64,000 nt of DNA from contig JBBPEB010000032.1 in the NCBI GenBank assembly GCA_039096225.1, positions 1,054,001 to 1,118,000 of the forward strand, given 5' to 3'. The position numbers and the translations under genes are program-made. Positions within the stretch are counted from its first letter, which is position 1; each line of letters opens with the position of its first letter. This DNA comes from Blastocystis sp. Blastoise. Lineage: Eukaryota; Protista; Bigyra: Opalinata. Below the pieces are notes generated by a model. It made no database searches. It was not told the origin of the DNA and saw only the letters and a list, made by a program, of their open reading frames with translations. Below, one piece after another: positions 16,826-64,000 of this stretch.

Positions 16826-16847
16826 GCCACCAGCCTAAAAGTGAATG

Positions 16848-17836: not shown

Positions 17837-17904
17837 ATTTTGGGGTGATTTTCAATCAAATTTGTTGTCAATTATTTTTATAAATATAAAACAAATATCG
17901 TCAT

Positions 17905-35227: not shown

Positions 35228-37897
35228 AATCGTGGTAAAAATATTCCAAGCTATGAGAAACTTTACCTGATTACGTTTTAAGAATAATTCAGCAATAACA
35301 TAGATAGACCCCTATCTGAAATATTCTGATTTTGTTTCAGAAAAATTGAAATAAAGAGTTACTTTTTGTATGTTTTGGGTTATTCATTATATTGTTTAAT
35401 ACTTTCTTTTTTTATTATATTAATATGTCTATTGTTACAATTGTTGCCTTTTTATTATTATTATTTTACTGAATTATACAAAAACAAACAAAACAACAAA
35501 ATAAAAATGAATTGTGACTAATTCATTAACAAAATGAGTTTATAGATATACAATATTAATATTTATAACTTTATTATGTTCATTCAATATTATTTTAATC
35601 ATTTAAAACCTATATAAAAAATCATAAACTATAATCATTCAAAGTAATTATAAAAGAATAATAAATAAATAAAATATATACTTCTTCTGTAGTTTTTGTA
35701 TAGTGATTAATAATATATTACTATAAAAAAAGATAATAAAATAAGAATAACTATTTACATACAATTCATAAAATGGAAGAAAACTTTTATGAAATCTATT
35801 TTACTATAAAAATGAGTTGAATATAATTATATAGATACCTATTATTGCATAGATTGAACCAAATGACTATAAAAGATATAGAAAAATTATTATAGAAAAG
35901 AATGAAAATGTATTTATAATATACATACTTTATTATGAATAAAAATATATTAAACAAAAATTAAAACTAGAAAATCATCTCGTATGTTCTTATTGAACTG
36001 GATAATTATGCTTTTATACTTATTATATCTATATATAATAAAAAAATATTTAAAATAGCATGAAAATAAATAATAATAGAATACTGTTGTCTCAGTAAAC
36101 TATATAAATCATCATTTCTAGTATTATAAAGATATTCTATACTATAATAAACTAAACAAAAATGTAATTAAATTAAATATATAAAGATTCAATTATTAAA
36201 AAATTAGAAAAACAAAGAAAAGAATAGAATATTCTTTAAAATAAGCGAATCAAAAAGCTTCTTAGTGTTTATTAATTGTATTTTTAACTTCGTCATAACA
36301 AATTTTGAGGTTTTCAATGGTTGTTTTATTATTTCTTAAGATATAATTTGTAGCTTTTAATTGGTCCACCTTAGGACTCCACATATATTCCTATATAATT
36401 GTGTTTTGAAAGTTAAAAAGAAATATAAGGTTAGAATATATAAGAATCTAATTAGAGGCATTGTTAGAAATACCCAAAAAAACCATAATTATTTTAACCT
36501 GCCCAAAAAAAAATCGAATTGTTAGAAATACCCAAAATCTTTCAAAATTTTTGTTAAAATACCCAAAATTTTTACAAAATTGGTAGAAATACCCAACTGT
36601 TTATTTTAGACTCTAAACGATTGGTGGTTTGAAAACACAAATTCTTATAAACCAATTAAAATTCTTTTTATTTCTTTTGTCATTATTAGAAAAAATATAC
36701 TCAAGAATATATTTATATTTTCTTTATTAAAGCTTACATAAAAATTTTGTAGTAATTAAAACATAAGAAATATTTTAATAGATTATTATAATAATTTAGA
36801 AAAGTAGTTATTTAATTTAAGATAAGCATTTTTATTTACAAATTAAATATAATTATCTCAAATTTTTGGATTAAGGATAGTATAAATACTGCAGACACTT
36901 ATATCGACTGATTAGTGTCATTTATAGTGTAATAATATATTGTATTGCTCTCGAATAAAGCTTTTAAAAACTACAACGTAAGTTCTCATGATTTTTCATT
37001 AATTAATCACTATAAAAATGAAATTTGTTGTCCAGAATCACAAGAATATACTTTATTTTAATTTTGACATATTTAGACGATTAAAGCTTTAATTACTGCA
37101 TATTTAACAACAAAGATATCTGTAAATCAATATTAAATTCATGTTAATTATTTTTATGTTATAATTTGGTAACTGATTCAGTTCAGCCACAACCAGAAGT
37201 TGAAATATGTTTTGGTTTGATTAAGGTGAACTATCATAAGTTTAAAGATAGTAAATAAATAACAAAATTTGAGACTGTAAAAACATATGGAGTCAAAATT
37301 ATGTATGTAAAAAGTTTCAACTAGAAAATGTAGTTTTACTATATATGTAAAAGCTAGGGTATCGAATAAAAAAACAAAAAACCCCAAAAAAGAAGACTTG
37401 CTTACAGATGTTACATTTCAAATTACCCGTTTATGTTCCATTTCCAAGGTGATGATGTTTCTGGATGGGTAGTCAAAAGATATTGTTGTCACGACTCTTC
37501 TGAGCAAACTTAAATAAATAAATTATATTCTTATATTAACATATTTATAGAAATGCAATCGTTTGTATATATTATATATCAAATGAAACAAAAAGCAAAA
37601 AATAGATTATAAGTTGTTAAAAAATGTTAAAAATAAATTAAATGATTTAAAAGATAATACTAAACAATATATAGTGCTAAAAGAAAGAATAAAAGAAAAC
37701 AAATTAGACATATCATATGAACTATTAATATTTTTAATCAAGAATATATATATATGTATTACATGATTCTACATAAATATATTAATATATTAGATTTTCT
37801 ATTTTATACACAATATTTAATATATATAAATTTATATATATATGTATACATGTATACTATTCAATACATATGTATATCTATTCTATATACATATACA

Positions 37898-37932
<35 letters not shown>

Positions 37933-38153
37933 ATATATATATATATAGCATTCTATACATATGCTTATTTATATCTATATATAGAATTCTAATATATCCG
38001 ATTAAGTATATATATATATTCAATATATATATAATATATATTTTTCTATATATGTTATTCTTCATACTAATAAAAGTAACATATATACACAATTCTATTT
38101 ATTCTTTTATATATCAATATATATATAATTCTATATATCAAATATTGTGTATA

Positions 38154-40030
38154 GCGTTTTAAAAAATGAGAATTCAACTTCAATTGAATGAAAAAAACGA
38201 TTCTTAGAATAATAGGAATAGGAAAATTATAATAAGAAGTGGTAGTAATATACGTAAATGAAGAATGATAATAGAAGTTGATAAAAAAGTAGCATCACAA
38301 GTAAAATGAGAAAGAGAAAAAGTAGAAGTAGAAGGACAAGGAGATATAGAAGGACAAGGACAAGGACAAGGACAAGGACAAGGACAAGAATAAGACGATG
38401 GAGAAGGACAATGATAAGGCGAAGAAGAAGAATAAGAATAAGACGAGTGAGAAGGACAAGAAGAAGAAGAAGAAGAATAAGATGAGGGAGAAGGACAAGG
38501 ACAAGGACAAGAAGAAGGACAAGGACAAGGGCAAGGACAAGGACAAGGACAAGAAGAAGGACAAGGACAAGGACAAGAAGAAGGACAAGGACAAGGGCAA
38601 GGACAAGGACAAGAAGAAGTAGAAGGAGAAGGAGCAGGACAAGATAAAGGACAAGAAGAAGAAGAAGAAAAAAAAAAAAAAAAAAAAAAACATCAGTAGA
38701 AGATAAGAATAAGTAGAATGAGAATGATTAGAAGTAGAAGTATAAGGATAATATAGAAAAAGAAGACGAAGAAGGGATAATATGTGGGTATAGAAGAAGA
38801 AATATGAGAAAAATAGTGGAAAAAGAAGAGACTCAAAAGAGAATAGAAGGAGAGGAGCGAAATATGAATAAAAAGGAGAATAGGAAAGAGAAAGATAAGA
38901 AGGAGAAGAAGAAGGATAAGGATAAGAAAATAAGAATGACAAAGAGAATGAGGAGAGGAAATAGAAAAACGAGAAAAAATGAAGGAAAAAAGAAAGAGAA
39001 GAAGAAGAAGGAAAAGTGAAATTATAAAGCGAAGAAGAAACAGAAAGAGAAAGAAAATGATAAGAAGAATGAGAAGAAGAAGAATAGGAATGACAAGAAG
39101 AACAAGAAGTACAAATAGAAGAAGGACAAGAAGAAAGATAATAGAAGAAGGACAAGAAGGAACAAGAGAAGAAGGAGAAAAAGGAGAAGGAAGAAAAAGA
39201 GAAGGAAAAGAAGAAGGAAAAGAAGAAGAAGGAGAAGGAAAAATAGAAGAAGGACTAGAATGATGAGAAGTATAAGTAAAAACTAAAAGTAAAAAATAAA
39301 TATAAGAAGAATGAGAGAAGAATATGAAAAGGAGATAGAGAAGTAGACGTATAAGTTGAAGTAAAAGGAAAGAAAAAGAAATAAAAGTATAGTAGTAGAA
39401 ACAAAAGTAGAGATAGTGTAGAAGGAGAAGGAAAAGGAAAAGGAAAAGGAAAATCAATAGAAGAAGAATGAAAAGAAAAATTAGAAAAGGAGAAACATAA
39501 AAAGAAGAAGGAAGAGAAAGAGAATATAGAAAAGAAAGAGACAAAATAGAAGAAACAAAACGAAAGAAGTAGGAGAAGAAGAAATAATATTAATAATAAA
39601 AAAATGAATGAGAATAAGAAATAGAAGAATGGCAATAATGCTAATGGGAATGAAAACAAGAATAAGAAGAAAGGGAAATAGAAGAACAAGGAGAAACATA
39701 AGTGCAAGTAAAATAAGAAGAAAAAGTAGTAGTAGTGATAGAAGTGGATGTATAGCATAAGAAGTAGTAGAAGTAAAAGTATGAATAGGAGTAGAAGTAC
39801 AAGTAGAAGTATAAGTGGAAAAATAAGTAGTTGTATTAGTAGTAGTATTAGCAGTAGTGTAGAAGTTAAAATTGAAAAAAAAGAATAGAGTAAGTAATAG
39901 TCGTAGAAATATGAGTAGAAGTACAAGTAGAAATATAAGAATAAAGGAAAAAATGAAAGAAGCTGAAGGAAAAGAAGGAAATGTATAAGAAGAAGAAGAA
40001 GAAATAATAATGAGGAGAAATAGCAACAAA

Positions 40031-40083
<53 letters not shown>

Positions 40084-43000
40084 GAAGAAGAAGAAGAAGA
40101 AGAAGAAGAATTAGGAAAATGAGATGAATAAAGAAATGTAATAAGGAGTAAAATCTTGAGAAATAGAATGAGAAGTAAAAGAATAATAAGAAGTAGAAAA
40201 CTTTAACAAGTATAAATAGAAGAAGAAGAAAAAAAACAATGAGAAATATAATAAAAAGATTGAGAATAAAAGAAAAAAGAAAGAATTGAAAGATAATAGG
40301 AATAAGAATAAGAAAGATAATTAGAAGTACAAGGAGGAGTATAAGGAAAATGAAAAAAAGAAGTACAAGCAGAAGGAGAAGGTAATGTTGAAAAAGAATA
40401 GGAATGACGATAATAAGAAAGATAAAGAGAAATAGAAGGAAAAGGATAATGTGAATTAAAATAAGAATCACAAAAAGAAAAAGCAGAAGGAAAACGAGAA
40501 AAATTTGATTTACAGTGAGGAGAAAAAGAATTGTAAAAAAGAAGAAATATAATAAGAAGAATGAGAACAAGAACAGGAATGAAAATAAGAAAAAGAAGGA
40601 TACTTCAAATAAAAAGAATAACAAGAAAGACATAATATAGACTAAAAAATGATATAGAAGAAAGAGAAGATAGGAAATAAGGAGAAGAAGAAGATAAAGT
40701 AGAAGAAGAATTAGAGCAAGAACAGAATTACAGAAAGAAAAGTAGAATGAAAATAAGAAAGAGAATAGGAATATAAATAAGACGTAGAAGAAGAAATAGA
40801 ATCAAAATGAGACGAATTTAGAATAAAACAGAATATGTAAAGTAGATAAATACGGAGAATGAGAAATGAGAAGTGTATAAATAGAATAAAAATAACTAGG
40901 CGAACAAGTAGAAGAAAAGCAAAAAAAGAAGAATCTGGAGAAGAATCAGAATAAGAATAAGAATATGACTGCGAAAGTAATAGTAGAAGTATAAATAGAC
41001 TTATACTTAGAAGGAGAAGGAGAAGTAGAAGAAGAAGCATAATATGTATAAGTATAAATAGAAGAAGTATAGTATAAAGAAAATAAGAGAATAAAAAGGA
41101 GAATAAATGATATAAGTATAGTATAAATAGAAGAAGCAGAAAGAGAATATGAATAAGAATCGATAAAATGTAAGTATAAGTATAAATAGAAGAAAAAATA
41201 AAAGTAGAACAAGAATAGGAATAAGAATTAGAATTGAAAGAATATAATATGAAAAATAATAATAAGAAGTTGTATTAGTAAAAGTAGATGTAAAATGATG
41301 AATATAAGTTGATAAACTAGAAGTAGAAGAATAAGTTGATAAACAAGAAGTCTAACTATGGTAGAACTAGAAGAAAAAGTAAAAGAAAAAGTAGAAGAAA
41401 AAAAGGAGAAGCTCAAATTGAAGAATAAGAGTTAATAGTAGTACAAGTACAGTAAAAGGAGAATTGAAAGTAGAAGGAGAAATAGCAAGTAGTGGTAGTA
41501 GAAGCAGAAGTGTAAGAACAAGAAGAAGGAAAACTAGGAAGTACAACTAGAACTAGAAGTAGAAGAAAAAGTAGAAATGGACGTATATGTATAAATATAA
41601 GTAAGAGTAGATGTTCAAGTAGAATGAGAAGTATAAGAATAAGAGTAAATAGTAGTAGATATATAAGTATAATAGAAGTAGAAAAATACGAGTAAATAGT
41701 AGTAGAAGTAGAATGAAAATAATAATGATAATAAATAGTAGAAATAGTAGTAGTAGTAGAAATAGAATTAGAAGAATAAGAGTAAGTAGTAGTAGTAGTA
41801 GAAGTACAAGTAAAAGTAACAGTAAAATTATAATTACAAGTAGAAGAATAAAAACACGAAGGAAAAGAAGTTGAAGGACACGAAGTACAAGTAAAAGAAC
41901 TAGAATTGAAATAAGAAAGGAATGAAAATAATAATGATACAAAAAAGTGAAAAGAAGAAGAAGAAGAAGTAGCATGAGATGAATAAAGAAAACGAAAAGG
42001 AAGTAGAATAATAAGAAAAAGAATGAGAAGTGAAATAAGAAGAAGAATAAGAAAAGGAGATAGAATTAATATAAATAGAAGGAGAATAAGAAGTAGAAGT
42101 AGAAGTAGAAGTAGCAAGATAAGGAGAAGTATAATAAAGAGAATGAGAATGAGAATGAGAATGAAAAGAAAAAGTAAAATATGAAAGATAATAAGAATAA
42201 GAATAAGAATAAGAATAAGAATAAGAAGAAAAAGTAGAAATACAAGGAAGAGAGAGGAAAATGAAGATAAGAAGTAGAAGCAGAAGGAGATAATGAGATT
42301 GAAGAAAAAATATGTTGGAGAACAATAATAAGCCTGATAATGAAAAATAGAATGAAAAGGAGAATTCGAAGTAAATTAATAGGTATATGAAGAATAACAA
42401 GAAGCAGAATGAAAATAAGAAAAATTAGAATTAGAATAGAAGAATGGAAATTGTAAAAAGAAGAAATAGAATGAGAAGAGTGAAAACAAGGAGACGAATG
42501 AAAACAAGAAGAATTAAAACAAGAAGAATTAAAACAAGAAGAATTAAAACAAGGAGAAGGACGATACAAATAAGAAGAAGAAAAAGAGAATAGAGAGAAG
42601 AAATGATATAGAAGAAGGAAAAGATAGGGAACAAGAAGAAGAAGAAGAAAACCAGAATAAATAGAAGGAAAAGTAGAAGGAAAAAAGAAAGATAATAAGA
42701 ATTAAAAGGAAATGCAGAAGGAAAATGAGATTAATTTGGAGAAAAAAAAACATGTAAAAGTAGAAGAATATGGAGAATAAAAAAAGGGAAGCATACGAGT
42801 AGAATAAAGAGAACTAGACAAGCAAGGAGAAGAAAGTAAAATAAGAAGAATTTAGATAAGGATAAGAATAAGAATAAGGATAAGAATAAGAACATGACAA
42901 ATAAAGTAGTAGTAGAAGCATAAGAGATGTATAAATAGACTTAGACTTAGAAGTGGAAATAGAAGGAGAAGGAGAAGGAGAAGGAGAAGGAGAAGGAGAA

Positions 43001-45107
43001 GGAGAAGGAGAAGGAGAATAAAAATGATAACAATAAGTATAAGTAGAACCATATGTATAAGGGCAACAACAAAAGATACGAATATAGGAGAAGGAGAAGA
43101 GAAATGAAAATTTGAAGTAGAATGAGAATGAAAATGAAAATAAAAAGTCGTTGAAAAATCAGAATACTAACGAGGAGAAGATAAAGAGGTGTAAAGATAA
43201 TATAATAAAAACAAGAAATAGAATATAAATAAAAATAAGAATAGCAAGAATAGAAAGAATAGCAATAATAAGAAGAATAAACAGAATAAAAAGGAGAAGA
43301 AGAAGAAGATGGAGAATAATAATAAGTGCAAGGAGAAAGAGAAAGAGTGAATAATGAAAATAAGAATAGTTGAATAAAACTAAGATGAAGAATTATAACA
43401 AAAACAGGAAGAAGAAGGAAAATGATAAGAAGAAGAATTAGAAGATGAATAAAAAAACAAAGAATAGAATAAGGAGTATGTTAAGCAGAAGTAAAAGTAA
43501 AATAAGAATAAGATGGAGGAATAGAATCATAATACTAATAACAATTAGAAGAAGAAATATGATAAAGAAACTAGGCTAATTAGAAGAAAAAGAATAGTAC
43601 TATTGAAAATAAGAATAAGAGTAACAAAGAAATATGTACAAAGAAAAATGAGTAAAAAGTATACTAGAAGTAGAATATAGAGAGAAAGACTATGATAATA
43701 TAATGTATAGAAGAAGAAGAAGAAGAAGAAGAAGAAGGAGAATAAGAAGAAAAATGACATGAAGTAGAAGTAGAAGGAGAATAATAGTTAAAAGGATAAT
43801 GTGAATAAGAATATGAAATGAATAATAATAAGAAGAAGAAGTAGACATAGAAGTAGATTGTGAAAGATAACGAGAATGAAAAAAGAAAGTAGAAGGTAAA
43901 TAAGAAGAAGTAGGTGAATAAGTAGTAGACAGAAATAGAAAGTGAATTAATAAGGAGAACGAAATTAAAAAGAAACTACGAATAACACCAGGAATAAGAA
44001 GTAGAAGTAGAATTAGATGAAAACTAGGAAGAAAAAATCAAAATAGAATGAGAATAAGTATATGGAGTAGAAAGCGAAATTCAACGATAAATAGAATGAG
44101 AATAAGTAGAAGAAGAAGAATAATTGGAGAACAAGAACAAGAAGGAAAATAGGAAGAAGAAGAAGAAGAAGAAGAAGAAGAAGAAGAAGAATTGAAAGAG
44201 AAACAGAAGATAAAATGGTTATTTACAATGAGAAAAGAATGGGAAGTAGAACAAAAACTTGAATAAGACGAAGAAGGCAACGGAGAAGGAAAAAGTAGCA
44301 TATGAAGGAAAGGGAGAAGTAGGACGTGGATAGTAATAAAAATAAGAAAGAAAAAATAAAATATTAGGAGACGTGGAACAAGAAGGAGAAAGTGAGATAT
44401 AAGGAGAAACTGAATAACAGAAAAAATAAGAGACTAAATAAGAAAAAAATAGGAAGTAAGACTAATATAAGACTAAGAATAAATTGAAGAAGGACAAGAA
44501 GGACAAGAAGGACAAGAAAAAGAAGAAATAGCAATAGCAATGAGAATAAGAAGTAAATCTATAATGAGAATGAGAAGCAGAAAGGAAGTATAAGTAAAAT
44601 AAGATGTATAGATGAAAGAAAAATAATAAAGATAGAAGATAGAAGATAGAAGATAGAAGATAGAAGATAGAAGATAGAAGATAGAAGATAGAAGAATGAA
44701 AGAATAGAAGAATGAAAGAATAGAAGATAGAAGATAGAAGATAGAAGATAGAAGAATGAAAGAATAAGTATAAGGATAAGAAGAAGAATTATTAAGGGAT
44801 AAGAAGAAGAAGAATAAAAAGGACAACAAAATAATAGTAGAATTCGTGAAGAAGTAATACTAAAGAAAATGAATAAGGAAGAACTAATATCCATATGAAA
44901 AAGAAGAAAAAAAAATGGAGTAAGAAGTTAATTAGAATGAAGAATGAAGAAGAAATAGCATATTAAGAGAAGAACGTGCTAGAGAGAAGCGAATAAAGTT
45001 CAATAAGCAAGATAATTATAATATTTAAAAGAATAGTAAACTGAATAAAAGAAGAGAATAGCAACTGATAACTTCAATCATAAATTAATACTATCTGACC
45101 AAACTCT
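38154..45107. repeat. ~7 kb purine-rich (+ strand) low-complexity tract with no sustained frame
   Basis: Strongly C-depleted on +. Arrays of GAA, GGACAA, GAATAA, GAAGTA, GGAGAA, AAT, a 7-mer AGAAGAT (~44630-44755) and a 15-mer (~42500-42555). All + frames are broken by stops. Confidence 0.85.
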
Positions 45108-45850
45108 CTATAGAAAATTAATAAAAAGTACAATAAGTCTAAAGAATATATAATATTAATAAAGTAATAATATAATAATAACTATTAAGACAAGAATATC
45201 AAATATATATTAATAGTCAGTTAAAATAAATTAGTTATACTATTAAAAGATATATACCTTAATAAAAACTTGAATCATTGCAATTTGTTTTGGTTATGCT
45301 TGGATTTGTTAAGATTCACTAAATAATTATATAAAATAAATAAAATAAATAGATTAAAGTATATATATATTAGAGAAACAACTAAATAGAAAAGTAAAGT
45401 AATTCAATTGTAAAAAATATATTTTTAAGTTAGAACAACATAACAACGCTATGATAATAATAGAGATGTACTAATAGCATAGAAATAAAATAGATATAAC
45501 AGAGAATAAACAAGATGAGAAAATGTAAAATAATTATATACCTTAGATTCATCTTTATTGTTCACCAAGACCTTTTCAGTTGATTTGAAACTAGATAAAG
45601 CTTGTTTTGAATATGTAAACAATAAGCAACCAATTGATCAACTGATTACTATATAAAATTAAATATTTGATGACAGCAGATGATACAAAATATAGATTTA
45701 TAACTAAAAAACATACATAGATTCATTTTATATGTCTATAATGACAATATATGAAATAAATCAATATTTGAATGTCACGAGAAATCATTCTGAGGATGGA
45801 AAAAGCGATAAATCAGCCTAAATAGCTAAACCAACCTCTTTGATAAAAAC
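45108..45850 (-). ncRNA. Spliced leader exons leading into the pyrimidine strand of the 7 kb tract (putative lncRNA)
   Basis: Minus-strand introns 45541-45319 and 45257-45108 (AAG|GTATA...TAG). No ORF. Weak similarity to 50520-50800. Confidence 0.35.
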
Positions 45851-46039
45851 TGTTTTGGGATTTAGTGAACGAGTTTTAAAAATAATTTCTAGAGATTCAA
45901 ATAATGGAATAAAAAGTCTTTTTTGATATGGTCCCTATTCTTAAAGTTTTTTAGAATTACTTCAATCCGTGAAAGTCTTATTCAGCATCAGCTTAAATGA
46001 ACTGCTGAAAGAAGTATATTTTTTAAATATTAGTATATG

Positions 46040-46892
46040 GATTATTTGTTTATTTAGAAGGTTATTTTACACTTTATATTTATATTATATTTTTATATGC
46101 ATATTATTATAGATTAGGAATGAAATGAGCACAGATAATGGACCAATTGGTGACTCATTCTTTTAGGTATGTGTTTATTTTGTGATATTATGTATATAGG
46201 TTTGGAAACATAATCTAGGGAGCCTGATGACGTTGACTATTCAATATTGGAAGAAAACGAAATGATGGGCATTTCCTTGTTGAGAATATTCTTGGTATCC
46301 GTTCTAGTTGTATGTTATTTCATATTTTATTTTTATATTTAATTATTATTTAGGAGATTATTAAAAAGAAAAAAGTAATTGGTCTCCATCTACTAAGAAA
46401 ATTGGTGTTTAGGTCCTTCTTTTGATTTTTATTATTTTATTTTTTATCAGAAGTATATATTTATGTTATTAATACTATATTGTATCTAATTATATAGAAA
46501 TGGCGAGTGATTATTGTTATGGAATTTTTGTAACTTTTCGATTTCAGCACAATAATTATCGAGTCCTTAAAAGTATATAAATATATTAAATAATTATTTC
46601 TATTCTATAGATTTATGGAGTAAATTAATATAATCATATATACAAAAAAAAATACTAGAAGAATATGGTTAAAAAGTATATATTTTTTTATTTTTATTAT
46701 TATTAAAATTATATAAATTTGTTTAATTAAATTTATATATTATAGTTATTTATTTTTGTTATAACTGATGTTCTAACATTGATATATGGTTCAAATATCT
46801 ATATATATATATATTATTTATAAATTCTTAATATTTTATTAATTTATTATATTATTTTTCTATATAGGACTATTAATTATCATTCTTTTATT

Positions 46893-46923
<31 letters not shown>

Positions 46924-47451
46924 TATTTATTTTCGATATATTTTATTCTTATTCATATATATAGTATTATTAAGCTATGTACTCATTAGCTTCTCTACAT
47001 CAATACTACTATGTGACTAGGTATATTATATATATATTTAATTATTAGCATATTATTTTCTATTACTTCTTAATATATATATATTTATATATTAACTAGT
47101 ATTTTTTATATAGAGAATGGGACGTTTCCCTTATGTTATAAACTTCATGGTCATCAATTTTTATATCTAAGGTATATCGTTTTTATATATAAGTAATTGT
47201 TTTATTGTAGTATATTGTTTCAAATTATTTCTATATATTATTCTATTTTCCGTACAATAATTATTTATGTTTTTTATATAATTTATATTATGTACCTATA
47301 ATTACTAATAATATCCTATTGTTTATATTTCTGTTATTCATGTCTCTATAGTTTTATTAGTTATATAAAAACATAACTAGTAAAACTGTAATTACATGTA
47401 TATATTATATAGGTGTTATATAAATATACGAATGTTGCTTTAGTTGAAGAA

Positions 47452-47548
<97 letters not shown>

Positions 47549-48635
47549 GTTATAGACTTTTATTGTATTCTTTTTATATTATTATTTTATACATTTTTCT
47601 CTCTATATAACATATACACAGATATATTTACCTAATATATACTCTTTAGAAAATTGATATATGTTTTATTTTGGAAGTTGATAATATATACTAAAATCAG
47701 TTCATATCAATTGTTTATTCTTAAACTGTATATATATATATATTATCTATCAAAGTCAAAGTTATATATAAATAGAATAATGAAGAATTATCTATATATA
47801 GATGGTCTTTAGTTCTATTACTACATTATTTTTATGTATTTAAGATATATATAAATATATTATATATATACTTTTATATATACTTATTATATAAATATAA
47901 ACTTATAGACTTATATATAGTAATATATCAGTTATCCTTTTATTTTTCTCATGAGTTTTTAAGTATATAGTCTTTTTATCTTATTATATATATAATACAT
48001 TTTTTATAAATTGACACAAAAGGTAATATTATTTGTATATATAATTTTATCTCAACTATTCTTCTATTTAATTCTTTTATATCACTTTATCTTTCTATAA
48101 CTATATTATGTATTATCATTTTATAATATAATTTGTTTATAGTTAATTATATATATATATATATATGTAGTAACAGTAATAACTCTTCTTTTGGTCTCTT
48201 TTGTTCAATTATACTAGTATATACACTATGATAATATATATGTATTCTATTTATCTCATTTTATATATAGTTTTCTATTTATTTTGTTATATTTATAATA
48301 CACTTATTGTTATGTATACTATATTTTCTTTTTGTTTATACTATTATACTTATATCATTTTTATTATATATAGGATTAAGGATATATATATAATTGATTA
48401 TGAATGATTTAGTTTTTGTATTATATTAAGCCTTATTTTCTTGTATATATATATAAATATAGGTATCCTTTACTTTATGTTCCAGTTTTCTTTTCTATTA
48501 TATACATTGATATTCACTATTGTGTATTAATATTATTATATATAGTGTGTGAAGGTATTAAATACATTCTGGTTAAGAGTATATATTTTCATTGTTTTAA
48601 TATATATACATAATATGTTCTTATGTTACATCAAA

Positions 48636-48683
<48 letters not shown>

Positions 48684-49237
48684 TTTCTTTTTTTCATTAT
48701 TACATTTATGTATATATTCATATATATATATAAACTTGTTATTCCCTTAATTAATTCATGTCATATTATTCATTCATTTTTTTATATATGTATATCTTAT
48801 ATTTATTATGTATATTATTATTTATGTATATAGATATTAATCGACTTATAGAAATTATTATAAATAATGTTAATACGATTTTTTTGTATATATTTTATTA
48901 ATATTTATAATAGTTTAATATGTAATATTTTACTATTATAATATTATATTGTGTTTATTTAATTTATTTATATATATTTTATTCATTTATTTTATTCTCT
49001 AGCTATTTATAGAGTATATCTTCAATTTATTTCCTACTATATATATGCAATTCTTATTTATAGTATATATTATATAATACTTCTTTTTTTATATATTTTT
49101 TTATTAGTATTCTGTTCTCTACTTTATTCTTTAATACATTATATTCTGTTATATATTGATATATTTTTTTTATTCTAAATGTTTTCATTATATAGGTTAT
49201 TATTAATAGGTATAATAGATATAAGAGGTATACTGGA

Positions 49238-49277
<40 letters not shown>

Positions 49278-49350
49278 CTACACTTTTTTTATAGTCTCTT
49301 TTCTGCAAACATATATATATATATATATATAATTATATTCGCATAATTAA
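46040..49350 (+). pseudogene. Intron-rich unit without an open frame (pseudogene or lncRNA)
   Basis: Many well-formed GTAT...TATAG introns around 30-110 nt exons. The best spliced frames I tried contain TAA/TAG/TGA (e.g. NLWSKLI*SYIQKKILEEYG*K). Confidence 0.45.
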
Positions 49351-49354
49351 TATT

Positions 49355-49423
49355 CCTTAGACTGAATATGGTCAGTATCAATCATTAATAGATTGTTATC
49401 AGGTTCAATTCCTGATCTAAGGT
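49355..49423 (+). ncRNA. Non-canonical tRNA-like cloverleaf 1 (mascRNA-like)
   Basis: Acceptor CCTTAGA/TCTAAGG. D arm CTGA-ATATGG-TCAG follows with no 8/9 linker. Stem CAATC-ATTAATA-GATTG. 3-nt variable region. T arm TCAGG-TTCAATT-CCTGA (perfect B box). T8 run ~12 nt downstream. Confidence 0.75.
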
Positions 49424-50261
49424 TATATACTATATTTTTTTTATATAAATTTTTATATTTTTCTCTATAGATATTCTCATTCATTATAGCCAGTATGAAA
49501 GGGTATATTGAGTTTCATGTAATTGAATAAACTCTATACATCGTTAGTCGCTCTTCTATATTGTTTTTAAATACCTTTACTTAAAACCAAACACATTCAC
49601 AATTACATTCACCTATAATTTTCTATTCAATAATTTATTTTGTTAATCATTCTTCTAATCAATTCTACACACAAATAAAAAATAAATATTCATCAATAAC
49701 ATCTTGAAGTCTATAAACAATCAATGCATTCTTTGCTTATATTCTTAAAAATCATTTCAACTGTTTATATTAATATAATTGACACTAATGATCATTTGTA
49801 ACATTTATAAACTACTTTCAAAACTTTTAAAGAACCTTGACAAATCTACATTACCTAGAAAACTATTATAATTAACTTTAGTTTATATAGGTCATAATTA
49901 AATTCAAATTACTAATAGAAAATTAAAATAACGACATTCTAACTCAACATATCACCAAGAAAAATCAATTGTGTTTGTAACTTCTCTAAAATTGAATTAA
50001 TTAGTGAAATATGTATTTAAATATATGTTGAATTCAAATTCAAACACACACAAACTCACCTTTTCTGACAGTTCTACACATTTAGGCAATCTAGTGACTA
50101 TCATATAATCGACTAATTCTTCTTGCCTTCATCAAGTCAAGTGATTTTCTCATGACTTGAATCATCAATTTTGTTTTATGTAACACTCTATAAATAATTA
50201 ATCAATTAACTATTTTTATTTACATAAATACATACTTCATCAACAACGACGAGACATCAGG

Positions 50262-51117
50262 AGTAAGAATAACAGTTTAAAGTATTTAAATAAAATAATA
50301 AATAATAAAAAGCAGAAATATTAAGATTTCAATAAAATTTAATAAGTTAATTTATAGTGAAGTTTCAATAATCATATAAAAAATATGATTAATTTCGTTT
50401 TTGTATGTTTTAAGTATATATTTATCTATATATAGGACCTAGGAGTATAGTAGAGTACCTTGCGGTCTCCATTGGCAGATTGATCTAAGGTGGTATGTTC
50501 TCTTTCTCTATTATAAGCTTATATAGGTGATGTAAAATGGTTAAGTTAGATGATCAGCTATTGTCTTATGGTTATAAATGGGATGATGTGACGTCACCAT
50601 ATAAAACTGTTTCTTTAGGCTTTCTCAGTGAGTCACAATGGATTGATTGTGTTTATTGTATCGGTTTTAAAGCTTCCAGAAAATAAAGTTGGTAATTGTC
50701 TCAACAAATTGGTCTTAAGTCACAAAGTAGCACAAATATCTAGGCTTAATAAACAACTTTCATAACTCAAATGTCATCGTTGTTATAGATTTGCTTGTAT
50801 TAATACTCAGATTGTAGATGTATATATTTTCTCTATTTATTTTCTTTATAATTATAATTATATTATTATATATACGTTCATATCTATTATTATAATGTTT
50901 TTAAATATAGTTCTTGCTTTTCTGGTCAATAACTGCTTGGTTTCTTTTTTGTATAGTATATATATATTATTAACTTCTTATATTTTGGTTATATTATATA
51001 AATTTCTTAATTATTGAATATTATTTTTATATATAATTATTATTTACTTTCTTCTATATATTTATTGACTTATAGTTTAAATTATTTCATTTTCTTTTTA
51101 TTTTTCTCTTTTTTATT

Positions 51118-51197
<80 letters not shown>

Positions 51198-53540
51198 CAA
51201 AACTTTTATATATTTGTTTTTATTCATTCTTATTTTCTCCTCTTGTCCTTAATTGGCCTTGTTCTCCTCTTCTCTCTTCCATTCATCTACTCTCTAGTTT
51301 TTACTCATTTTTATTCTTATACTCTTATGTTACATAAAACAGTTATTGTTTTTCTTAATATTACTTTATAGTATGTTTTATTTCATGTTCTTCTATTCTA
51401 TATTCTAGTTTTTCCTTCACTTTCTTCTTTCCTCCATTAATTATTACTGGTTCTTCTTCTCCTATCATTACCTACTCTCTTCATTTCAATCTCTTTATCA
51501 TGATTGTCTTCTTTTTCATTTCCTTCAACTCTTCCTTTTCCTACTCTTCTTCTTTATTTCCTTCTATATTATTACTTCTTTTTCTCATCTTCTTCCAATT
51601 ATACTTTCCTTATTCTTTATTCCTTTTAATTCTCATCTACACATTGTTTCTATTTTCCTTCTTCTTCTATATATCCTTATTTTTTGTCTCCTTGTTCATT
51701 CCTTTCTCGTTCTTTTTCATCTATTTATCCTTCTTCTATTTATTTTAATTCTGAATCACCTTCTCTCTATCTCTTTCTGTTTCTTCTTCTTTTATTTAAT
51801 CTTATTTTTCTTCTGGTCCTTCTTGTCTTCTTTTTCTTCTCCTTCTCTTTCTGTATATCCTTCTTCTATATATTCTTTATCTTCTATCTTCTTCATCTGT
51901 ATTTTCTCTTTTATGTATCCTTATTCTTATTCTACATTTTCTCCATATCATTCTCCTCCTATATCTTCTATACCTCCTTTATCTCCTTATTCTTCGTCTA
52001 TGTCTTCTATTCTTCTTCATCTTTTTTCTTCTTCTATATATATATTCTACTTATTCTTCTCTATCCTTGTCTATATATCTTTCTTCTATATTTTCTGCAT
52101 CTACTTCTTCTTCTATATCTTCTATTTATCATTATTTTCCAACATATTTTTCTATTGTACTTCTTCTTTTCTCTTCCTTCTCCTTCTTTTCTATATCTTC
52201 TGTTTATCTTATTCTTCGTCTATATATAATTATTCTCTTTATTCTTCTTCTTTATATATATATTCTTCTTTTTCGATATATTCTTTTTTTTTTTCGTTCT
52301 TTTCCTTGTTCTCCTTCTCAATCTCCTTCTCTTCATTGATATCCTTCTTCTTCTTCTATTCATCTTTTTCTCCTTCTTCTTCTTCTTCTTCTTCTTCTTC
52401 TTCTTCTTCTTCTTCTTCTTCTTCTCCTTCTTCTCCTTCTCCTTCTCCTTCTCCTTCTCCTTCTTCTACTTCTCCTTCTCCTTCTTCTTCTCCTTCTTCT
52501 TCTATTCATCATCATCTTCTTCTTCTTCTATTCATCTTTCTTCTTCTTCTTCATTTAATCCTTCTTCTTCTTCATTTAATCATTCTTCTCCTCCTCTGTC
52601 TTCTTCTTCTATTTATCCTTCTTCTCTTTCTATTCTCCTATATATCCTTTATCTCCTGTTTTTCCTTCTCAATCTCCTTCTCTATATCTCTTTCTTTTTC
52701 TTCTATTTATCCTTTTTCCACTTTTTCTATATCTTTTGCTTCTTATCTTTCTATATCTTCTCTATATCATTCCTCTCCTTCTTCTTCAGCATCTTCTTTT
52801 TAAATCTTATAATTATTTTCTCTTTTCTGTTTTTCTCATTTTATTCCATTTCATCTATTTTTCTATATCTCATTATTTTCAATATTTATTATACAGAATA
52901 TTATTTATATTTAATGTTTTTCACTTTCATACTCTTTTTCTAATATTATATTTTATCATTCTCCTACATCTTCACTTGTTCTTCTTATGTGTATTCTCCT
53001 CATATTTTTATTTCTTTTCTAATAGATTTTCCTTTATAGTTCTTCTAACTCTTCTCTACCTTCTTTCTTCTTTTTCTCTTCTACATGATTTTCTATTCTT
53101 CATCTTTCTTTTTTCTTTTTTATCTTCTTATCTTATTATCTATATGTGCTTCCTCTTCCCCTAATTCTTCTTTATACATATAAATTCTTTTCGCTCTTTA
53201 TCCTTCTAATCAATTCCTTATTCTCATTTAATTAATATTATTCTTCTTCTTAATTTATTTTCCCTTATTCTCCTTATTCTTGTCTTCAATTTTTTTCTAT
53301 ATTCAATTCTTATTTTTCATTATCTTTTATATCTATATATATATATATATATATACATACTTCTCTTCATATTTTAATTATTTCTATCTGTTATACTTAT
53401 TAATATAATATTTATTTTTATTAATAAAAAGATTTTCCCATTTTTATTTCTTATTTATATTTCTTATTTCATTAATTTATATATATATATATATATATTA
53501 ATATATATATATATTGGATATTATGTATTTTAATATTATT
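50262..53540 (+). ncRNA. Spliced unit with no evident ORF and a 2.1 kb pyrimidine-rich terminal exon (putative lncRNA)
   Basis: Plus-strand introns (e.g. GTATGT at 50493 to TATAG at 50526) and an acceptor TATAG at 51196, then a (TCT)/(TCC)-rich tract 51197-~53330. The ORFs there arise from A-depletion. Confidence 0.4.
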
Positions 53541-53557
53541 ATCATTATTATTATTAC

Positions 53558-53626
53558 TCTTATGCTCTATAAGGTGAGAGGCTATCATAATTAGATAGCA
53601 ATCAGGTTCAACTCCTGACATAAGTC
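53558..53626 (+). ncRNA. Non-canonical tRNA-like cloverleaf 2 (mascRNA-like)
   Basis: Acceptor (T)CTTATG/CATAAG(T). D arm CTCT-ATAAGGTG-AGAG with no linker. Stem GCTATC-ATAATTA-GATAGC. 2-nt variable region. T arm TCAGG-TTCAACT-CCTGA. Confidence 0.75.
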
Positions 53627-54971
53627 ATTCCTTATATATATATATATTGATATTTTATTTAATAAACATTTTAATTATATGTTCTTTTTACACTTATGAA
53701 TGCATTTATTAAATTATTTATAGCTCTTCATCCTTCAAAACTTCATAGTTTCTGAAATGAGTTGTAATCTGTTTTATTCTCAACAGTGTAGCTTATTCGA
53801 AATATGTTAGAATTGAGTTAAATGCAGTTTTAAAACTTAGATTCATTTTTTATTTTCAAAATATACTCAAATACAGAGTTTATTTAGCAATCATTAATAC
53901 TTTAACAACTGTAGTTTATTATTTTAAACTGAATTCTGGTCAGTATGCTCAACATAAGCAACCAAACACAATACATACGCATTCATGATTTTTAAACAAC
54001 ATTTTCCATTTCGACATTTACTTGATCCAGAATAAAACTATCTTTCCTTTTGATATAGTATAGAGAAACTAATACCATATACCAAACAAAACTTGTTAAC
54101 ATGAATCTCGTCATCTATTAAATATTTTTCTTAATCAATTCACAGTTCATACTCTTAAAACAGTTATTTGAGATTAATATTTATATATTTGTCTTTAAAC
54201 AATATTTTCATGACACTGTAATAGTATATATGAAAATACAAAGAATCAAGAAATCTGTTAATTATCAAAAAATAAGTTCTATTTTCTTAAAACATCTTTA
54301 TAAGATTTATAAACTCATATAATATAAATATATAGATCTTATATAAAGTATTCATTGAATTAACTAATTTGTCAGTAAATTAAAAGTATGTTATATAAGG
54401 TAATTCTATGTTATCTTTTTTAATCAGGTTTATCTTATAGTTGTTCATCGCTTATACGTCTGCTAATCTTATTTTTTAAAACAATTACAGACAATTATGT
54501 TATGTTCCTTGTCTATTAAGTTATTTTATTGAATTAATAGTATAAATACAGGGTATATAACAAAACAAATGTGTATATTAGTTAAAATAAGACATAAATA
54601 TAAATAAAGAAAAATAGATAAAATTGCCAATAAGCAAATTCAAGGAATAATATAGTACAACAAATGAATTTCTAATAGAAACTTAAAAATCGATTGATTG
54701 GATCAAATAGTCAAATCGTAACGTCATAATATGAATTATTCTTTTATTTTTTTGTTAATTTAAATTCTAGAAATACATCTAATAAACACGGTTATTATAT
54801 AAATTAATACGATTGGACAATGAAATCAAAATGTTAACAGATACTTTTGGGTATTTCTACCAAATCATACAAAAAATTGGGTATGTATACAAATCAATAG
54901 GGAAATCTGGGTATTTCTAACATTTTTCCATCTAATTAATATTGACAAATACATATAAACATATATATATA

Positions 54972-55694: not shown

Positions 55695-56953
55695 ATGGCA
55701 ACAAGAGGATTTGGTTCACAAGGCTATAAAGCCAAACGAAAAAGTAATTTAATTATTATTATAACTATATATCTAGATATTTCAGTTGCAGATCTGAATG
55801 ATGGATCTCATCATCATATGTTTAATGAAGAATCTAATGATTATAGTAGTATAGAAACTAATGACTTTAATGAAGAACCAAATAAAACCATAAAAGAGTC
55901 ACTGATAGAAAACATAATTGTATTTATATAACTCATTATTACTAGAAGTATTATGATTAATTATATATTATATGTATAGTATTCAAAAAATTGTATAAAA
56001 GAAACAGAAAATAGAAGAGTAGAAGAAGAAATATATTCTTGTTGGCGTTCCTTAACAATAAGTAAAGCTAAGATTAGAAATATATACAAATTAGTTAACT
56101 CTATTCAGAAACTAGCAGCACCTCAAAGTATTCCTATTCCAATTCCTAATCATGGTCAGGATATGATAAGAAAATATTGTACCACTCACAGTGAAACACC
56201 TATACATAAAAATATATATATATGTAATAAATGTAATGAGTTACTTGGATTCAATAGTGGAAGAAATTTGATACCTTTAAACGAAATAAAATGTCAAAAT
56301 GAAGAATGTAATATGAATATTGGTATGCTTATATATATATATATATATATTATACATATATATATATTATACATATTACACATATTATACATATTATACA
56401 TATTATACATATTATATGGCTATAATATATCTATTGTATACCTATTATATATCTATTATGTATCTATAATATATTTATTATATATCTAATATATGTCTAT
56501 TATATGGCTATAATATATCTATTGTATACCTATTATATATTTATTATATATCTATTATATATCTATTATATATCTAATATATGTCTATTATATGGCTATA
56601 ATATATCTATTGTATATCTATTATATATTTATTATGTACCTATAATATATCTATTGCATATCTAATATATGTCTATTATATGGCTATAATATATCCATTG
56701 CATATCTAATATATGTCTATTATATGGCTATTATATATCTATTATATATCTAATATATGTCTATTATATGGCTATAATATATCTATTGTATATCTAATAT
56801 ATGTCTATTATATGGCTATAATATATCTATTGTATATCTATTATATATTTATTATATATTTATTATATATCTATTATACATCTATTATATATCTATTATA
56901 CATCTATTATGTACCTATAATATATCTATTATACATCTATTATGTATTTATTG

Positions 56954-57048
<95 letters not shown>

Positions 57049-59592
57049 AACAAAGGTAACTATCTTACCAATAATTCCAAGGATTCGATTCTTGTTATCT
57101 TCAAAAAGACTAATACATGATATATCATATTATACTAAAGAGGAAATAATTAGTATTCTTCAGAATGAAAGTGTTTCTTTGAATCAAATTCCTTTATTCA
57201 TGACAGGTATAAATTTCAAGAAATCTATAAATGATATTATTAATAAAGGTGACATTTTTCTTGTTTTCAGTATGACCTGTGATGGAATATCACCCTTTTC
57301 AGATCCTGTCTCAGATGAGAATCTATCTTCATTTCCTATTCTTATAAAGTTGCTGAACTATAAAGAAATAAGAGAAGCAGATCATCGTAAGTTTTGGACG
57401 TATAGTGTCACAAAGGAATCATTCTCATCTTCAATATTTGATATATTAGTAGAAGAATTTAAAATCCTATATAAAGGGATAGAGATGGATGTTTGTATAA
57501 ATGATAGAATAGAAAAGAAAACAGTAATTGGATTATTATTACATACATATGGAGACTGTGCTGCCATTACGAAAGTTGCAAACTTTACAGGATCCTCATC
57601 CCTTTATCCATGTAGATGTTGTGAGTTAAGATGGTGCAGAAAGCAAAAACATTTTCATCAAGGCATAAAATGTACATATAAAGAAGTCAAGAAATATGTA
57701 CATACAAATAACACGAAAAAATCAGTAACAAGTATAAACTATCCATCAGCCGTATTATTAAATAATAAATCTACTCCCTATTCTATACTACCACAAATGA
57801 AGGATTATCATACATCAAATGATACTATTATTGAAAGACTACCCAGGAAGGATTCTTTTAAAGATTCGCTTAAATTAGTAGAGTATCCATTAAGAACAAA
57901 AATATCAATTCAGAAAAATAGAAATTCATGTAGTGATTGTGTATCTTTCAAAGGTATGAAGAAAATTCCAGGTATTCTAGAAAAACTTCCATATTTCGAT
58001 CCATCAACTTGCTATTGCATCGATACGATGCACTTGTTCAATAATGTTTCTACGCTAATTATTAATTTGCTGTTTGGTTTTAATACTAAACAATATGCTA
58101 ATAAATTATCCAGGAAATATTTCAGTAACGGAGAGAAGTATATTAAACATTTTTCATTAAATCCTACAAATATGTCCATTATTGAGTCTCGTATATCATC
58201 TATTAATACGTTATATAATAAAAATGAATATGAGTTCAGATATATATTAGATGAAAAGAAATATTATAATATGTCATCACATACAAGAATCTTCTTCGTA
58301 TCATGTATACTACCACTAATAACCCTAGACTTTAGTAATGTTGATTCACCAATAATATTATTAATAGATCCTCTAGCTACAATAATATATCAGGCATTTT
58401 CATATAATGGTAATACTCCCAGCGCTTTATTGAACATATTTAAAGATCAATGTTCTCTATTCTGTTTTCTTTGTGAACTATTGTTACCAAGAGAAATTAT
58501 AAACTCTCAAATTCATCTTATGAAACACTTACCTGAAACAATTATAAATTCAGGATCTTTAATATACTCTTCCACCTATGAATCTGAACGTTTCTACTCA
58601 TTTCTTAAACGATCTACTTACGGAAGAAAAAGATTTAATGAATCATGTATTAGAGTAATAATAGAAAAGGAGGTTACCGATATTAACTTAACTGATAATT
58701 TAGAGGATATAAATGAAGATAATATAGTAAATGATATATTAATTGCTGAACATAATAATGATAATGAAAATGATTTTCTTTCTCGAGAGGACACATTTGA
58801 AGGTTTTACTAATATTCATATTAATCGAGGAGAAATAAATGTAGTAAAGGGTTTGCGTGCTTCTCCAAATATTGATTTATCTGAATCACAAATAAAGGAA
58901 ATAATTTATATTCTATTATCATCACCTAATGACTTTGTTAATATGGCACTTCTCCCTAATGTAGATATAAACAGTTATATAAATATTTCAAGTTGTCTTG
59001 AAGATCATTCAGTTTTTCAAACATTACTTCTAAACTTCAAAAAGATACCTATTGTTTTTTACTCAGAAGTATTAATTAATGAAACCAAAGTATTTTCTTC
59101 TTCAGGAGTTGATGAAGGTATTGAACGACAAGATAATTCATATATAATGTATAATACGTATGATAGTGGAGAAGAACAGCAAACTCATCTTATTAAAGCA
59201 CTAAACTATATTCAAATTGGTCCTTTTATATTGATCCAGAAACACGAGTATCCATTAGCTCGTATGTCACGAACTAGATTATATTATATTATAAATGATT
59301 CTAATAGACAAATTCCAAGAACATCTAAATACTCAACATCTTTCATTGATATTTCCAATATAATTCCAGAAAATTTAATTATAGTAGACATTCATAATAA
59401 TAAGATTATGGAGAGTGACGCTTCTTATGAAGAACCATCAGTATATAATATATATATATATATATATATAGAATATATATATATAATATATAGATAAGGA
59501 GTAAAAGAAGTATTATAAGAACTGAATTTGTTTCAGCAAACTCAGTCATTACTAGCACAGTATTTATGCCACGTTACTGTAGATCATTATAA
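55695..59592 (+). CDS. EnSpm/CACTA-superfamily DDE transposase (Transposase_21-like), 5 exons
   Basis: The N-terminal CxxH/CxxC exon joins in phase (G|GA) to the large exon 57048-59440. Motifs FSMTCDGISPF, LLHTYGDCAAITKVANFTG..LYPCRCC, IDTMHLF and HLMKHL..INSGSL..STYESERF. Last exon 59494-59592. Confidence 0.88.
56340..56960. repeat. Intronic minisatellite (9-, 11- and 13-bp AT-rich units)
   Basis: ACATATTAT repeats, then ATATCTATTAT / ATATGTCTATTAT / TATGGCTATAA units, inside transposase intron 56323-57047. Confidence 0.85.
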
Positions 59593-61709: not shown

Positions 61710-64000
61710 TTATATAATTATTTTTATTATATTATCATTATCATTATCTTCTTGAACAACTAAAATCTCTTCAAAATAATTTGGTAATGATTCTAATAAA
61801 TGTATAAAATCTTTATGAATAGGATTATATACTTGTAATTGATTTATTAAAAAATCATCTAACCATCTTCTTTCATTCTCTTCAAATATACTATATATAT
61901 TATATACTATCTCATTCTCTATATTATATAATCTCTCTTTCTTATTCTTCTCTTCTATATATCGATTAAACATATCATTCAATTCTTCTATTGTAGATCC
62001 ATATAAAAATACTGGATAGATATCTTTACATATATATATCGAATATCCAATACCTATTGCTATTATTGGAATATATCGATTTATTAAATTATATAAATCT
62101 CTATATTCTTCTTCATAATTATATATATAATAATTATCACTAAATATAAAAAGAAAAGAAGGAATAGATCGAGACAATAATAACGATGAAGCAATATTTA
62201 TTGTATTATACATATTCATATTCATTTCTGATGGAGTCTCAAATATATAAAATAAACTAGAAAGAATAGAAGCAGACATCAATTCTTTAGATGATATTCC
62301 TGTTGCTATATATATACTCTCTTTATTATTTATCCATATATCTATATATTCAATATTACATTCAGATAAACTATATAAAATTGTAAATATTATTTGAATA
62401 GAAAATAATATATTACTTATATTAAAAGCAATTGGAGAATTATCTATTATTATAGATATACTATAATTTCTCTTATCTCCTCGATTATATTTCTTAAATA
62501 TCTTATATATATTATAAGGATCAATTAATGATTGTATATAATTCTTCATATAAATAGTTTCTCCAAAATATGAAGGAGACCATAAATTATTCTCATTAAT
62601 AGGAAATAAAAAAGAAGAAAATAAATAAGTAAATGAAAGAGGATGAATAGATTGAAGTAAAAAATTAAAATCAATACATGTATCTATATTAGGAAAATAA
62701 AATAATAATGAAGAAGATATAGAAGATATAGAAGATAAAGAAGATAAAGAAGATAAAGAAGATAATGATAATGATGATATTTTTGAATATAATAAATAAT
62801 GAATAGATTGATTTGAAGAAGGAAATATAGGATTCTTCATAAATGAAGATAATATAATATTCTTATTATTTAAAGAAGAATAAGAAATAGATGATATTAA
62901 AAAAGGAATATAAGAATAATTATGATTATCAATATTTATTTTCTTTCTATTTATATCTTCTATTGAATTCCAAAGAAAAGAAAGAAATGTATCTGATATT
63001 ATAGATATAGAATCAATAGTAGTATTATAATGAGTAATATGAGAAGGAAATAAAGAATTCAATGAGATTTCAAGTTCTTTCTCTTCTTGTATTGAAATAT
63101 CATCATTCTTTATATGAAATATATATATTTTTGATAAGATAGATCGAATCTGTTTATATATATTATCTTTAGGATATATACATAATTCAGATAAACAATC
63201 AGATATAAAAATACATGGAATATCTTCAGAAAGAAAATCTTCTATATTCGATTCTTTTATCTCTTTATGTATATATATAGATAAATAATGAAATGGAGAA
63301 CAAATAAATTTAGATATTTTTGAAAGATCTAAGAAGAATGATATATATTCAAATAATGAAGATAAAGGATTTATTTGAATTCTATAGAAATGATCTTCAG
63401 TATAACAAATATATAATATCATTTCAATATGAAGTGATTTAAAAAATAAATAGAGAATACATAATAATAAAGAACGATAAGATCTCATTTTATATGTTAT
63501 TGTAATTGATGAATCAATAAGTATACATATAGAAGAAATAAATATATTTTCTTTATTTTTATTATTTGATAGAAATATAAAGAAAGAAGAAAGCCATCGA
63601 GATATTAATGGACATAAGGATATTATATAATGAGAAAGTACTAAAGAAGAATCTTCATCAATTGTATGATTTTCTTTTTCTATTAATTTATAAGTTTTAA
63701 TTGAAGATAAAAGTAATATAGGAATATAAGAAAAATATGAAATAGAAGATCGTTTAAAGAACATTTGATAATATTCAGAAATAGAAAATGAAATATATTC
63801 TTTAGGAATATCTATTGAAATGTAATTTTCTATTTGATAAGTATAATTATTTAAACAAATATTTATATCATTTTTATTCTTATTATAAATATTTAAATCT
63901 CTTATTAAAATAATTTTATTATTATTTTGTTTATTATTATTATTATTTTGTTTATTATTATTATTATTTTGTTTATTATTATTATTATTTTGTTTATTAT
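61710..64000 (-). CDS. Large intronless ORF with a midasin C-terminal/VWA-like domain; 5' end beyond the window
   Basis: Frame is open from the window end (Asn-rich 21-bp repeat) to 61710. G..IYMKNYI..YKIFK, YSISIIIDNS (degenerate MIDAS), LFIFSD and IIAIGIG resemble VWA beta strands. Confidence 0.6.
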   Translation of the reverse strand, partial: NKQNNNNNKQNNNNNKQNNNNNKQNNNKIILIRDLNIYNKNKNDINICLNNYTYQIENYISIDIPKEYISFSISEYYQMFFKRSSISYFSYIPILLLSSIKTYKLIEKENHTIDEDSSLVLSHYIISLCPLISRWLSSFFIFLSNNKNKENIFISSICILIDSSITITYKMRSYRSLLLCILYLFFKSLHIEMILYICYTEDHFYRIQINPLSSLFEYISFFLDLSKISKFICSPFHYLSIYIHKEIKESNIEDFLSEDIPCIFISDCLSELCIYPKDNIYKQIRSILSKIYIFHIKNDDISIQEEKELEISLNSLFPSHITHYNTTIDSISIISDTFLSFLWNSIEDINRKKINIDNHNYSYIPFLISSISYSSLNNKNIILSSFMKNPIFPSSNQSIHYLLYSKISSLSLSSLSSLSSLSSISSISSSLLFYFPNIDTCIDFNFLLQSIHPLSFTYLFSSFLFPINENNLWSPSYFGETIYMKNYIQSLIDPYNIYKIFKKYNRGDKRNYSISIIIDNSPIAFNISNILFSIQIIFTILYSLSECNIEYIDIWINNKESIYIATGISSKELMSASILSSLFYIFETPSEMNMNMYNTINIASSLLLSRSIPSFLFIFSDNYYIYNYEEEYRDLYNLINRYIPIIAIGIGYSIYICKDIYPVFLYGSTIEELNDMFNRYIEEKNKKERLYNIENEIVYNIYSIFEENERRWLDDFLINQLQVYNPIHKDFIHLLESLPNYFEEILVVQEDNDNDNIIKIII

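Follow-up and report, generated by a model that had tools for sequence, protein, structure and literature searches.

Mutator-like elements (MULEs) are defined by a target-site duplication (TSD) of 8-11 bp and by terminal inverted repeats (TIRs) of 14-500 bp, and deletion of the transposase is the commonest route by which they lose autonomy (PMC6446971, PMC3903597). Some MULEs carry additional DNA, as the Pack-MULEs, or an extra cargo possibly serving the element itself, as the VANDAL/KIU elements with their anti-silencing VANC cargo (PMC13317346). In another system, that of mascRNA and menRNA, tRNA-type processing of a long non-coding RNA (lncRNA) is described as a peculiarity of MALAT1 and NEAT1 (PMC12941219). 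Here we describe an 18.5-kb element, at positions 36455-54929 of a 64,000-nt stretch of the genome of Blastocystis sp. Blastoise (the whole stretch is called the window), for which both comparisons matter. The Blastocystis host is in this case a protist of the tortoise gut. According to the available part of the assembly study (PMC12129017), its tortoise isolates have long-read assemblies of 26.0-33.3 Mb with 21-23% GC, and that part gives bulk figures only for transposons. The assembly used here comprises 33.3 Mb in 34 contigs with about 21% GC, and the window lies on contig C21.

We found that the window element descends, by deletion of the transposase, from a 20.4-kb autonomous MULE family, that its cargo does not code for protein, and that two tRNA-like cloverleafs (hereafter, mimics) within the cargo are held in shape by compensatory changes. 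As an explanation of the whole we favour, with modest confidence, a derivative mobilised in trans, carrying a non-coding cargo in which the mimics would act as tRNA-processing sites.

Ends of the element and its copies in the genome

The element is bordered by the same 9-bp TSD, ATCTAATTA, on the left (36446-36454) and on the right (54930-54938), the exact match that a preliminary description of this DNA had reported. The left end (36455-36595, + strand), found again at 17 paired loci, is made of a short imperfect TIR and 4-5 subterminal repeats, and the right end (54848-54929, - strand) of 2-3 subterminal repeats and the TIR. The TIRs had been described as being in register; this holds for their G-initial ends and for a perfect core of 15 bp that begins at the matching offset, 8 nt inside each end, but the outer 7 nt are mismatched and the repeats as a whole are short and imperfect, yet inside the range of the superfamily. 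The mirrored subterminal repeats were found as described, with a GGTAG variant innermost on both sides. This variant occupies both ends in 9 of 9 complete copies lacking the transposase, and GTTAG occupies both ends in 7 of 7 autonomous copies; a variant that switches in step at the two ends is as expected if the ends travel together.

When the assembly was searched with the terminal 250 bp, the left end gave 21 matches and the right end 17. All 17 right ends pair with a left end in the same orientation, 15.6-23.8 kb away, and the paired loci are spread over 13 contigs. An exact 9-bp direct repeat, a length within the limits of the superfamily, was present at the junctions of 15 of the 16 copies with both ends complete, although four of these repeats carry less weight because they fall in simple sequence. 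The TSDs are of 14 rather than 15 different kinds because a copy on contig C22 duplicates the window's own site together with its flanks. With ends that pair at 17 loci and with these TSDs, the 18.5-kb stretch is confirmed as one Mutator-type element that moved whole, as had been proposed. The preliminary description had also suggested looking for copies with other TSDs, for an autonomous transposase between the same TIRs and for an empty site: the first two were found (the transposase is described below), and no empty site was found by sequence search of this assembly.

Some of the copies deserve separate mention. The C22 copy (C22:23461-46379) repeats the window insertion with both flanks (the left 1.5 kb identical, the right flank 97%) and has a 4.4-kb insert in the spacer region upstream of the segment that we call unit B; it represents either a segmental duplication or a second haplotype. 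The copies at C16:1306508-1322117 and C4:1557645-1573314 have arms that are 100% identical to each other; in the former the right TIR is cut off, and the latter is without a matching TSD.

Transposase loss and mobilisation in trans

Seven copies, on contigs C8, C13, C14, C19, C20, C23 and C31, are autonomous and 99.8-99.9% identical. They are 20.4 kb long, except that of C19, which reaches 23.1 kb owing to a nested insert of 2.8 kb, and all seven contain an identical intact MULE transposase frame. The protein matches the MULE domain PF10551 (E 2.7e-10, 41 bits, against a cut-off of 27.6) and the SWIM domain PF04434 (E 4e-8, 33 bits), and its N-terminal domain matches PF03108 weakly. In its annotated form (P0001, 853 amino acids), for which NCBI has an identical protein from Blastocystis sp. 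Blastoise, it is encoded by four exons within the first 4 kb of the autonomous element. Its catalytic motifs, assigned by their position, are D484, D549, C570xxH573 and E647, that is, the autonomous partner has the DDE transposase with CxxH and zinc finger that characterises the superfamily. From the 99.8% identity between copies we infer that the autonomous form spread recently.

The window copy belongs to a subfamily of ten copies, at nine independent sites, that is without the transposase core and whose arms are 92-100% alike where they are free of inserts. It aligns to the autonomous element over the first 1.2 kb and then from 38.4 kb to its end. A search with P0001 (tblastn, 47% identity, E 1e-25) identified decayed 5′ exons of the MULE transposase, corresponding to the N-terminal domain and interrupted by stops, at 37175-37640 on the + strand; downstream of this remnant about 2.4-3 kb, with the DDE core and the SWIM domain, are missing. 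The element had been thought to contain no recognisable protein gene; the remnant corrects this, and the gap reflects a deletion.

The stop codons of the remnant are common to most sister copies of the subfamily, and among the matches listed in the genome-wide transposase search none lies inside any of the ten copies. Because the stops are shared and the transposase match is lacking throughout, deletion and decay preceded the multiplication to ten copies, which took place with all cargo modules in place; and because the transposase was lost before their spread, the ten copies must have moved in trans. Very probably the window element was moved, by cut and paste, with the transposase of the seven intact copies; they have the same ends, and the earlier suggestion of mobilisation in trans is well supported by a helper residing in the same genome.

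Compared with MuDR and its deletion derivatives, the Blastocystis family is alike in the 9-bp TSD, in the TIR range and in the DDE transposase with SWIM domain of the autonomous copies. It differs in its size of 15-24 kb, about three quarters of which is non-coding cargo in both forms, and in that the derivative retained this cargo rather than shrinking. The family is a case of Mutator transposition at 15-24 kb with a mostly non-coding load, and it provides a clean natural comparison, of seven near-identical autonomous copies with ten transposase-less ones that have the same cargo; the locus adds proof that the transposase-less form transposed repeatedly with its full load.

Three observations on transposases and autonomous copies stand apart from this argument. 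At least 25 further MULE transposase matches occur in the genome, with 26-43% identity; they fall into several families, and some of their frames are intact. The nested element of the C19 copy (element positions ~16500-19290, 2.8 kb) has inverted ends of ~40 bp, sits at a TA-rich site and contains no open reading frame (ORF) of at least 110 amino acids. The C20 copy has 13 private substitutions within about 100 bp (element positions 13010-13113), a cluster due to either gene conversion or a polishing error.

Cargo layout and the tRNA-like cloverleafs

About 15 kb of cargo are common to the window copy and the autonomous copies, collinear at 77% identity from 38.3 kb on. The cargo opens with a non-coding, purine-rich low-complexity tract (tract 1, 38250-45050; 75-91% A+G, pyrimidine-rich on the - strand) of GAA-like trimers and hexamers, about 7 kb long here versus about 4.3 kb in several sister copies. 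A non-repetitive spacer follows (45050-46050), kept in all copies at 76-85% and without codon bias, which is possibly a divergent promoter or leader region. Then comes unit A (46050-49350, +), in which motif calls place short blocks resembling exons, separated by TA-rich, GT-AG intron-like segments, and which has no conserved ORF; it ends at cloverleaf 2 (49355-49422, +). After a second non-repetitive spacer (49430-50400), unit B begins with a leader (50400-51250, +) of two exon-like blocks and TA-rich segments, with an ORF of 49 amino acids that is interrupted in the autonomous copy, and continues with a non-coding pyrimidine-rich low-complexity tract (51250-53300, +; 77-86% C+T). Cloverleaf 1 (53558-53625, +) and a non-coding right arm (53630-54847; 91-96% identity among the 17 copies) close the series. 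Both giant strand-skewed tracts and both tRNA mimics of the preliminary description are thus present. A tandem duplication of the cassette, with similar 700-bp blocks after each cloverleaf, was considered and rejected: the spacer after cloverleaf 2 is unlike the block after cloverleaf 1, their similarity not exceeding that of shuffles.

Three or four intron-rich units had been reported. At 46-48 kb a crude intron caller made 11 calls per 2 kb, versus up to 8 elsewhere on the + strand, so that by motif calls, that is, by predicted splicing, only this unit stands out on that strand. The same caller also made 11 calls per 2 kb at 10-12 kb on the - strand, outside the element.

Both 68-nt cloverleafs fold (z -2.2 and -3.3). 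Eight mimic sequences, including a third type from a flank, align without gaps, and seven base pairs in the acceptor, D and anticodon stems have changed on both sides, while the T arm is invariant. In this alignment 92.6% of the cells are paired, compared with 34-44% in slid controls, and none of 500 shuffles reached the covariation score. Between distant elements the mimics are 92-96% identical at orthologous positions and their flanks 72-78% (binomial p 1e-4 to 4e-8), which supports the view that the mimics are real and selected. A covariance model found both mimics in all 17 copies and at least 150 matches genome-wide. A mimic of the third type lies on C23 near 116.3 kb (L030:302-377, - strand), about 1.1 kb beyond the right end of the C23 copy.

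A decoding tRNA has a U8-R9 linker, and Y32-U33 and R37 in its anticodon loop. We considered the mimics not to be decoding tRNAs because their acceptor stem joins the D stem directly, without this linker, and because their anticodon loop, which varies among them, has A32 and U37. ARAGORN calls only one of the two, cloverleaf 1, as tRNA-Ile(aat); neither reaches an Rfam tRNA score, and the Rfam search returned a TA-repeat artefact only. With mascRNA and menRNA (PMC12941219) they share a small, covarying, non-decoding tRNA-like fold whose T-arm hairpin is the most conserved part, and a position that closes a putative non-coding unit. They differ in having no match to mascRNA or menRNA in sequence and structure, in the absence of an upstream triple-helix motif, in retaining an anticodon-like arm and in residing in the transposons of a protist, where their cleavage is putative. 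In the literature searched, within the limits of that library, no description of tRNA-like modules inside MULEs was found.

The mimics are most likely either tRNA-processing signals, for RNase P and RNase Z, or small units of RNA polymerase III (Pol III). Among mechanisms we lean, tentatively, towards the former. The non-coding units of the element would be transcribed, RNase P and RNase Z would take each cloverleaf for a pre-tRNA, and the transcript would be cut where each TA- or pyrimidine-rich unit ends, as at mascRNA in MALAT1. Such cleavage would halt read-through and let the element persist better. The tracts and the exon-like blocks are probably, for the most part, filler that is tolerated, made of DNA captured long ago and of microsatellite growth; recombination would have handed it on and exchanged it between copies. 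We prefer the RNase P/Z mechanism because a covarying acceptor stem and a fixed T arm are what both enzymes read, and because both mimics come directly after a T-rich unit, on its sense strand. Several points weigh against it. The eight sequences behind the covariation are of only three types; TA-repeat slippage lowers the identity of the flanks and inflates their contrast with the mimics; by inspection there is no U-rich/A-rich triple-helix motif upstream of either mimic; and no mimic closes the third unit, which is the 7-kb tract taken on the - strand. Should the mimics be RNase P/Z sites, transposons of a protist too would use such processing as a device, and the question is directly testable, since the assembly study (PMC12129017) produced RNA-seq for the isolate.

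The main rival, which we regard as unlikely, is that each mimic is a Pol III mini-gene in its own right or a TFIIIC-binding site, acting as a chromatin barrier or giving a small RNA, with no need for a long transcript. The T loop is a near-consensus B box, invariant in sequence besides its pairing, and related mimics near the transposases of a MULE family ~31% identical are antisense to the transposase, so that orientation to the mRNA is not fixed. A run of at least four T follows within 12 and 27 nt of the two mimics, but with 42% T such runs are frequent; for want of the linker the A-box region is shorter, and covarying acceptor and anticodon stems would be unnecessary for a role confined to the DNA level.

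Origin and coding capacity of the cargo, and neighbouring features

The cargo as a whole could also function as a cassette for three spliced non-coding RNAs of benefit to the element, for example as anti-silencing decoys, a reading that we find doubtful. The modules are kept in order in all 17 copies (their spacing is nearly constant in the 10 copies tabulated, except for tract 1 and nested inserts) and in more distant elements, at least eight in number, of which one adjoins a transposase 37-39% identical to that of the helper; moreover, the transposase was lost and the cargo retained. Against this, the length of tract 1 ranges from about 4.3 to 7 kb and its identity between copies falls to near background (65-72%), the exon-like blocks are conserved no better than the spacers, and several predicted splice sites differ between subfamilies. 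Identity between window and autonomous copies is patchy, 95-99% at 46.4-48.2 kb and 66-88% in the tracts and elsewhere; this points to exchange by recombination between the subfamilies, which can account for the sharing. In the tests run here, no part of the cargo besides the two mimics appears to be under selection.

The related proposal that the accessory payload of the transposon is RNA, namely spliced pyrimidine-rich non-coding transcripts matured by host RNase P/Z at the mimics, needed for survival or spread and kept even by the transposase-less copies, seems to us equally improbable. A mobile cassette of lncRNA and tRNA mimics had been suggested for the locus. The non-coding nature of the cargo and the selected mimics agree with it, but the cassette is not stand-alone, the same cargo being present in the autonomous 20-kb element, and as a reading of the whole cargo it may be entertained as a hypothesis. 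VANDAL/KIU elements (PMC13317346) are comparable as MULEs with an extra cargo possibly of service to them; VANC is protein-coding, and no cargo protein was found in the window element.

We rate as quite unlikely that the element is an ordinary Pack-MULE, with decayed captured host genes and the mimics as passengers resembling short interspersed elements (SINEs). Like Pack-MULEs, it has MULE ends around non-transposase DNA with exon- and intron-like pieces, is non-autonomous for want of the transposase core and moves in trans. Capture of gene pieces by MULEs is known (PMC13317346), the TA-rich intron pattern of unit A is host-like, and the mimic copies are scattered over the genome. It differs in that its cargo is also in the autonomous element and includes selected RNA folds, and in that no internal fragment could be traced to a host gene. 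Precisely, no host parent was found among the best candidates of DNA and protein searches of the genome, in which single pieces or exons served as queries and which an old diverged donor could escape; one unit-A exon matched element copies only, with stops in the diverged ones. Unlike passengers, the mimics outconserve their flanks at orthologous positions, and no tail or flanking duplication is visible by eye. A decayed-gene origin of the units is compatible with our preferred explanation, the deletion derivative with mimics as processing sites; only the passenger claim for the mimics is disfavoured.

That the cargo encodes protein in a variant genetic code, read by the element's own tRNAs, is very improbable and was refuted by frame and codon tests, even though some exon translations look protein-like and the tracts are rich in TAA and TAG in triplet register. 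All three stop types occur in every frame, and substitutions between window and autonomous copies are spread evenly over the three codon positions (48/48/56 and 31/39/34, for example). In the tracts the triplet phase changes every 45-150 nt, and the indels of tract 1 ignore the frame (37 of 110 are multiples of 3), which also rules out a mucin-like or charged low-complexity protein in the tracts. The variable anticodon loops with A32 and U37 argue against decoding, and the transposase of the autonomous element is written in the standard code. No Pfam match better than E 0.003 was obtained with 135 stop-free cargo pieces from two copies, and no ATG frame of units A and B was shared between the subfamilies when the joined predicted exons were read in three frames.

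The possibility that the two ends belong to separate MITEs (miniature inverted-repeat transposable elements), or that the region is misassembled, which had been named as fatal to a single element, is negligible and refuted, since pairs of ends occur on 13 contigs, at 17 loci, with TSDs of their own and an unchanged internal order.

Outside the element, the window contains an open frame of 858 amino acids (56921-59494, +) with a weak match to DUF4218 (E 4e-4), a domain typical of CACTA transposases, and upstream of it an 11-bp tandem array at about 56300-56900. Three other long open frames have no Pfam match: 5927-7432 (+, 502 amino acids), 11764-13137 (+, 458 amino acids) and 61713-63998 (-, at least 762 amino acids). 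Two inverted-repeat pairs of 78% identity, 4495-4752 with 27025-27282 (258 nt) and 16611-16815 with 17515-17719 (205 nt), are probably the ends of other transposons.

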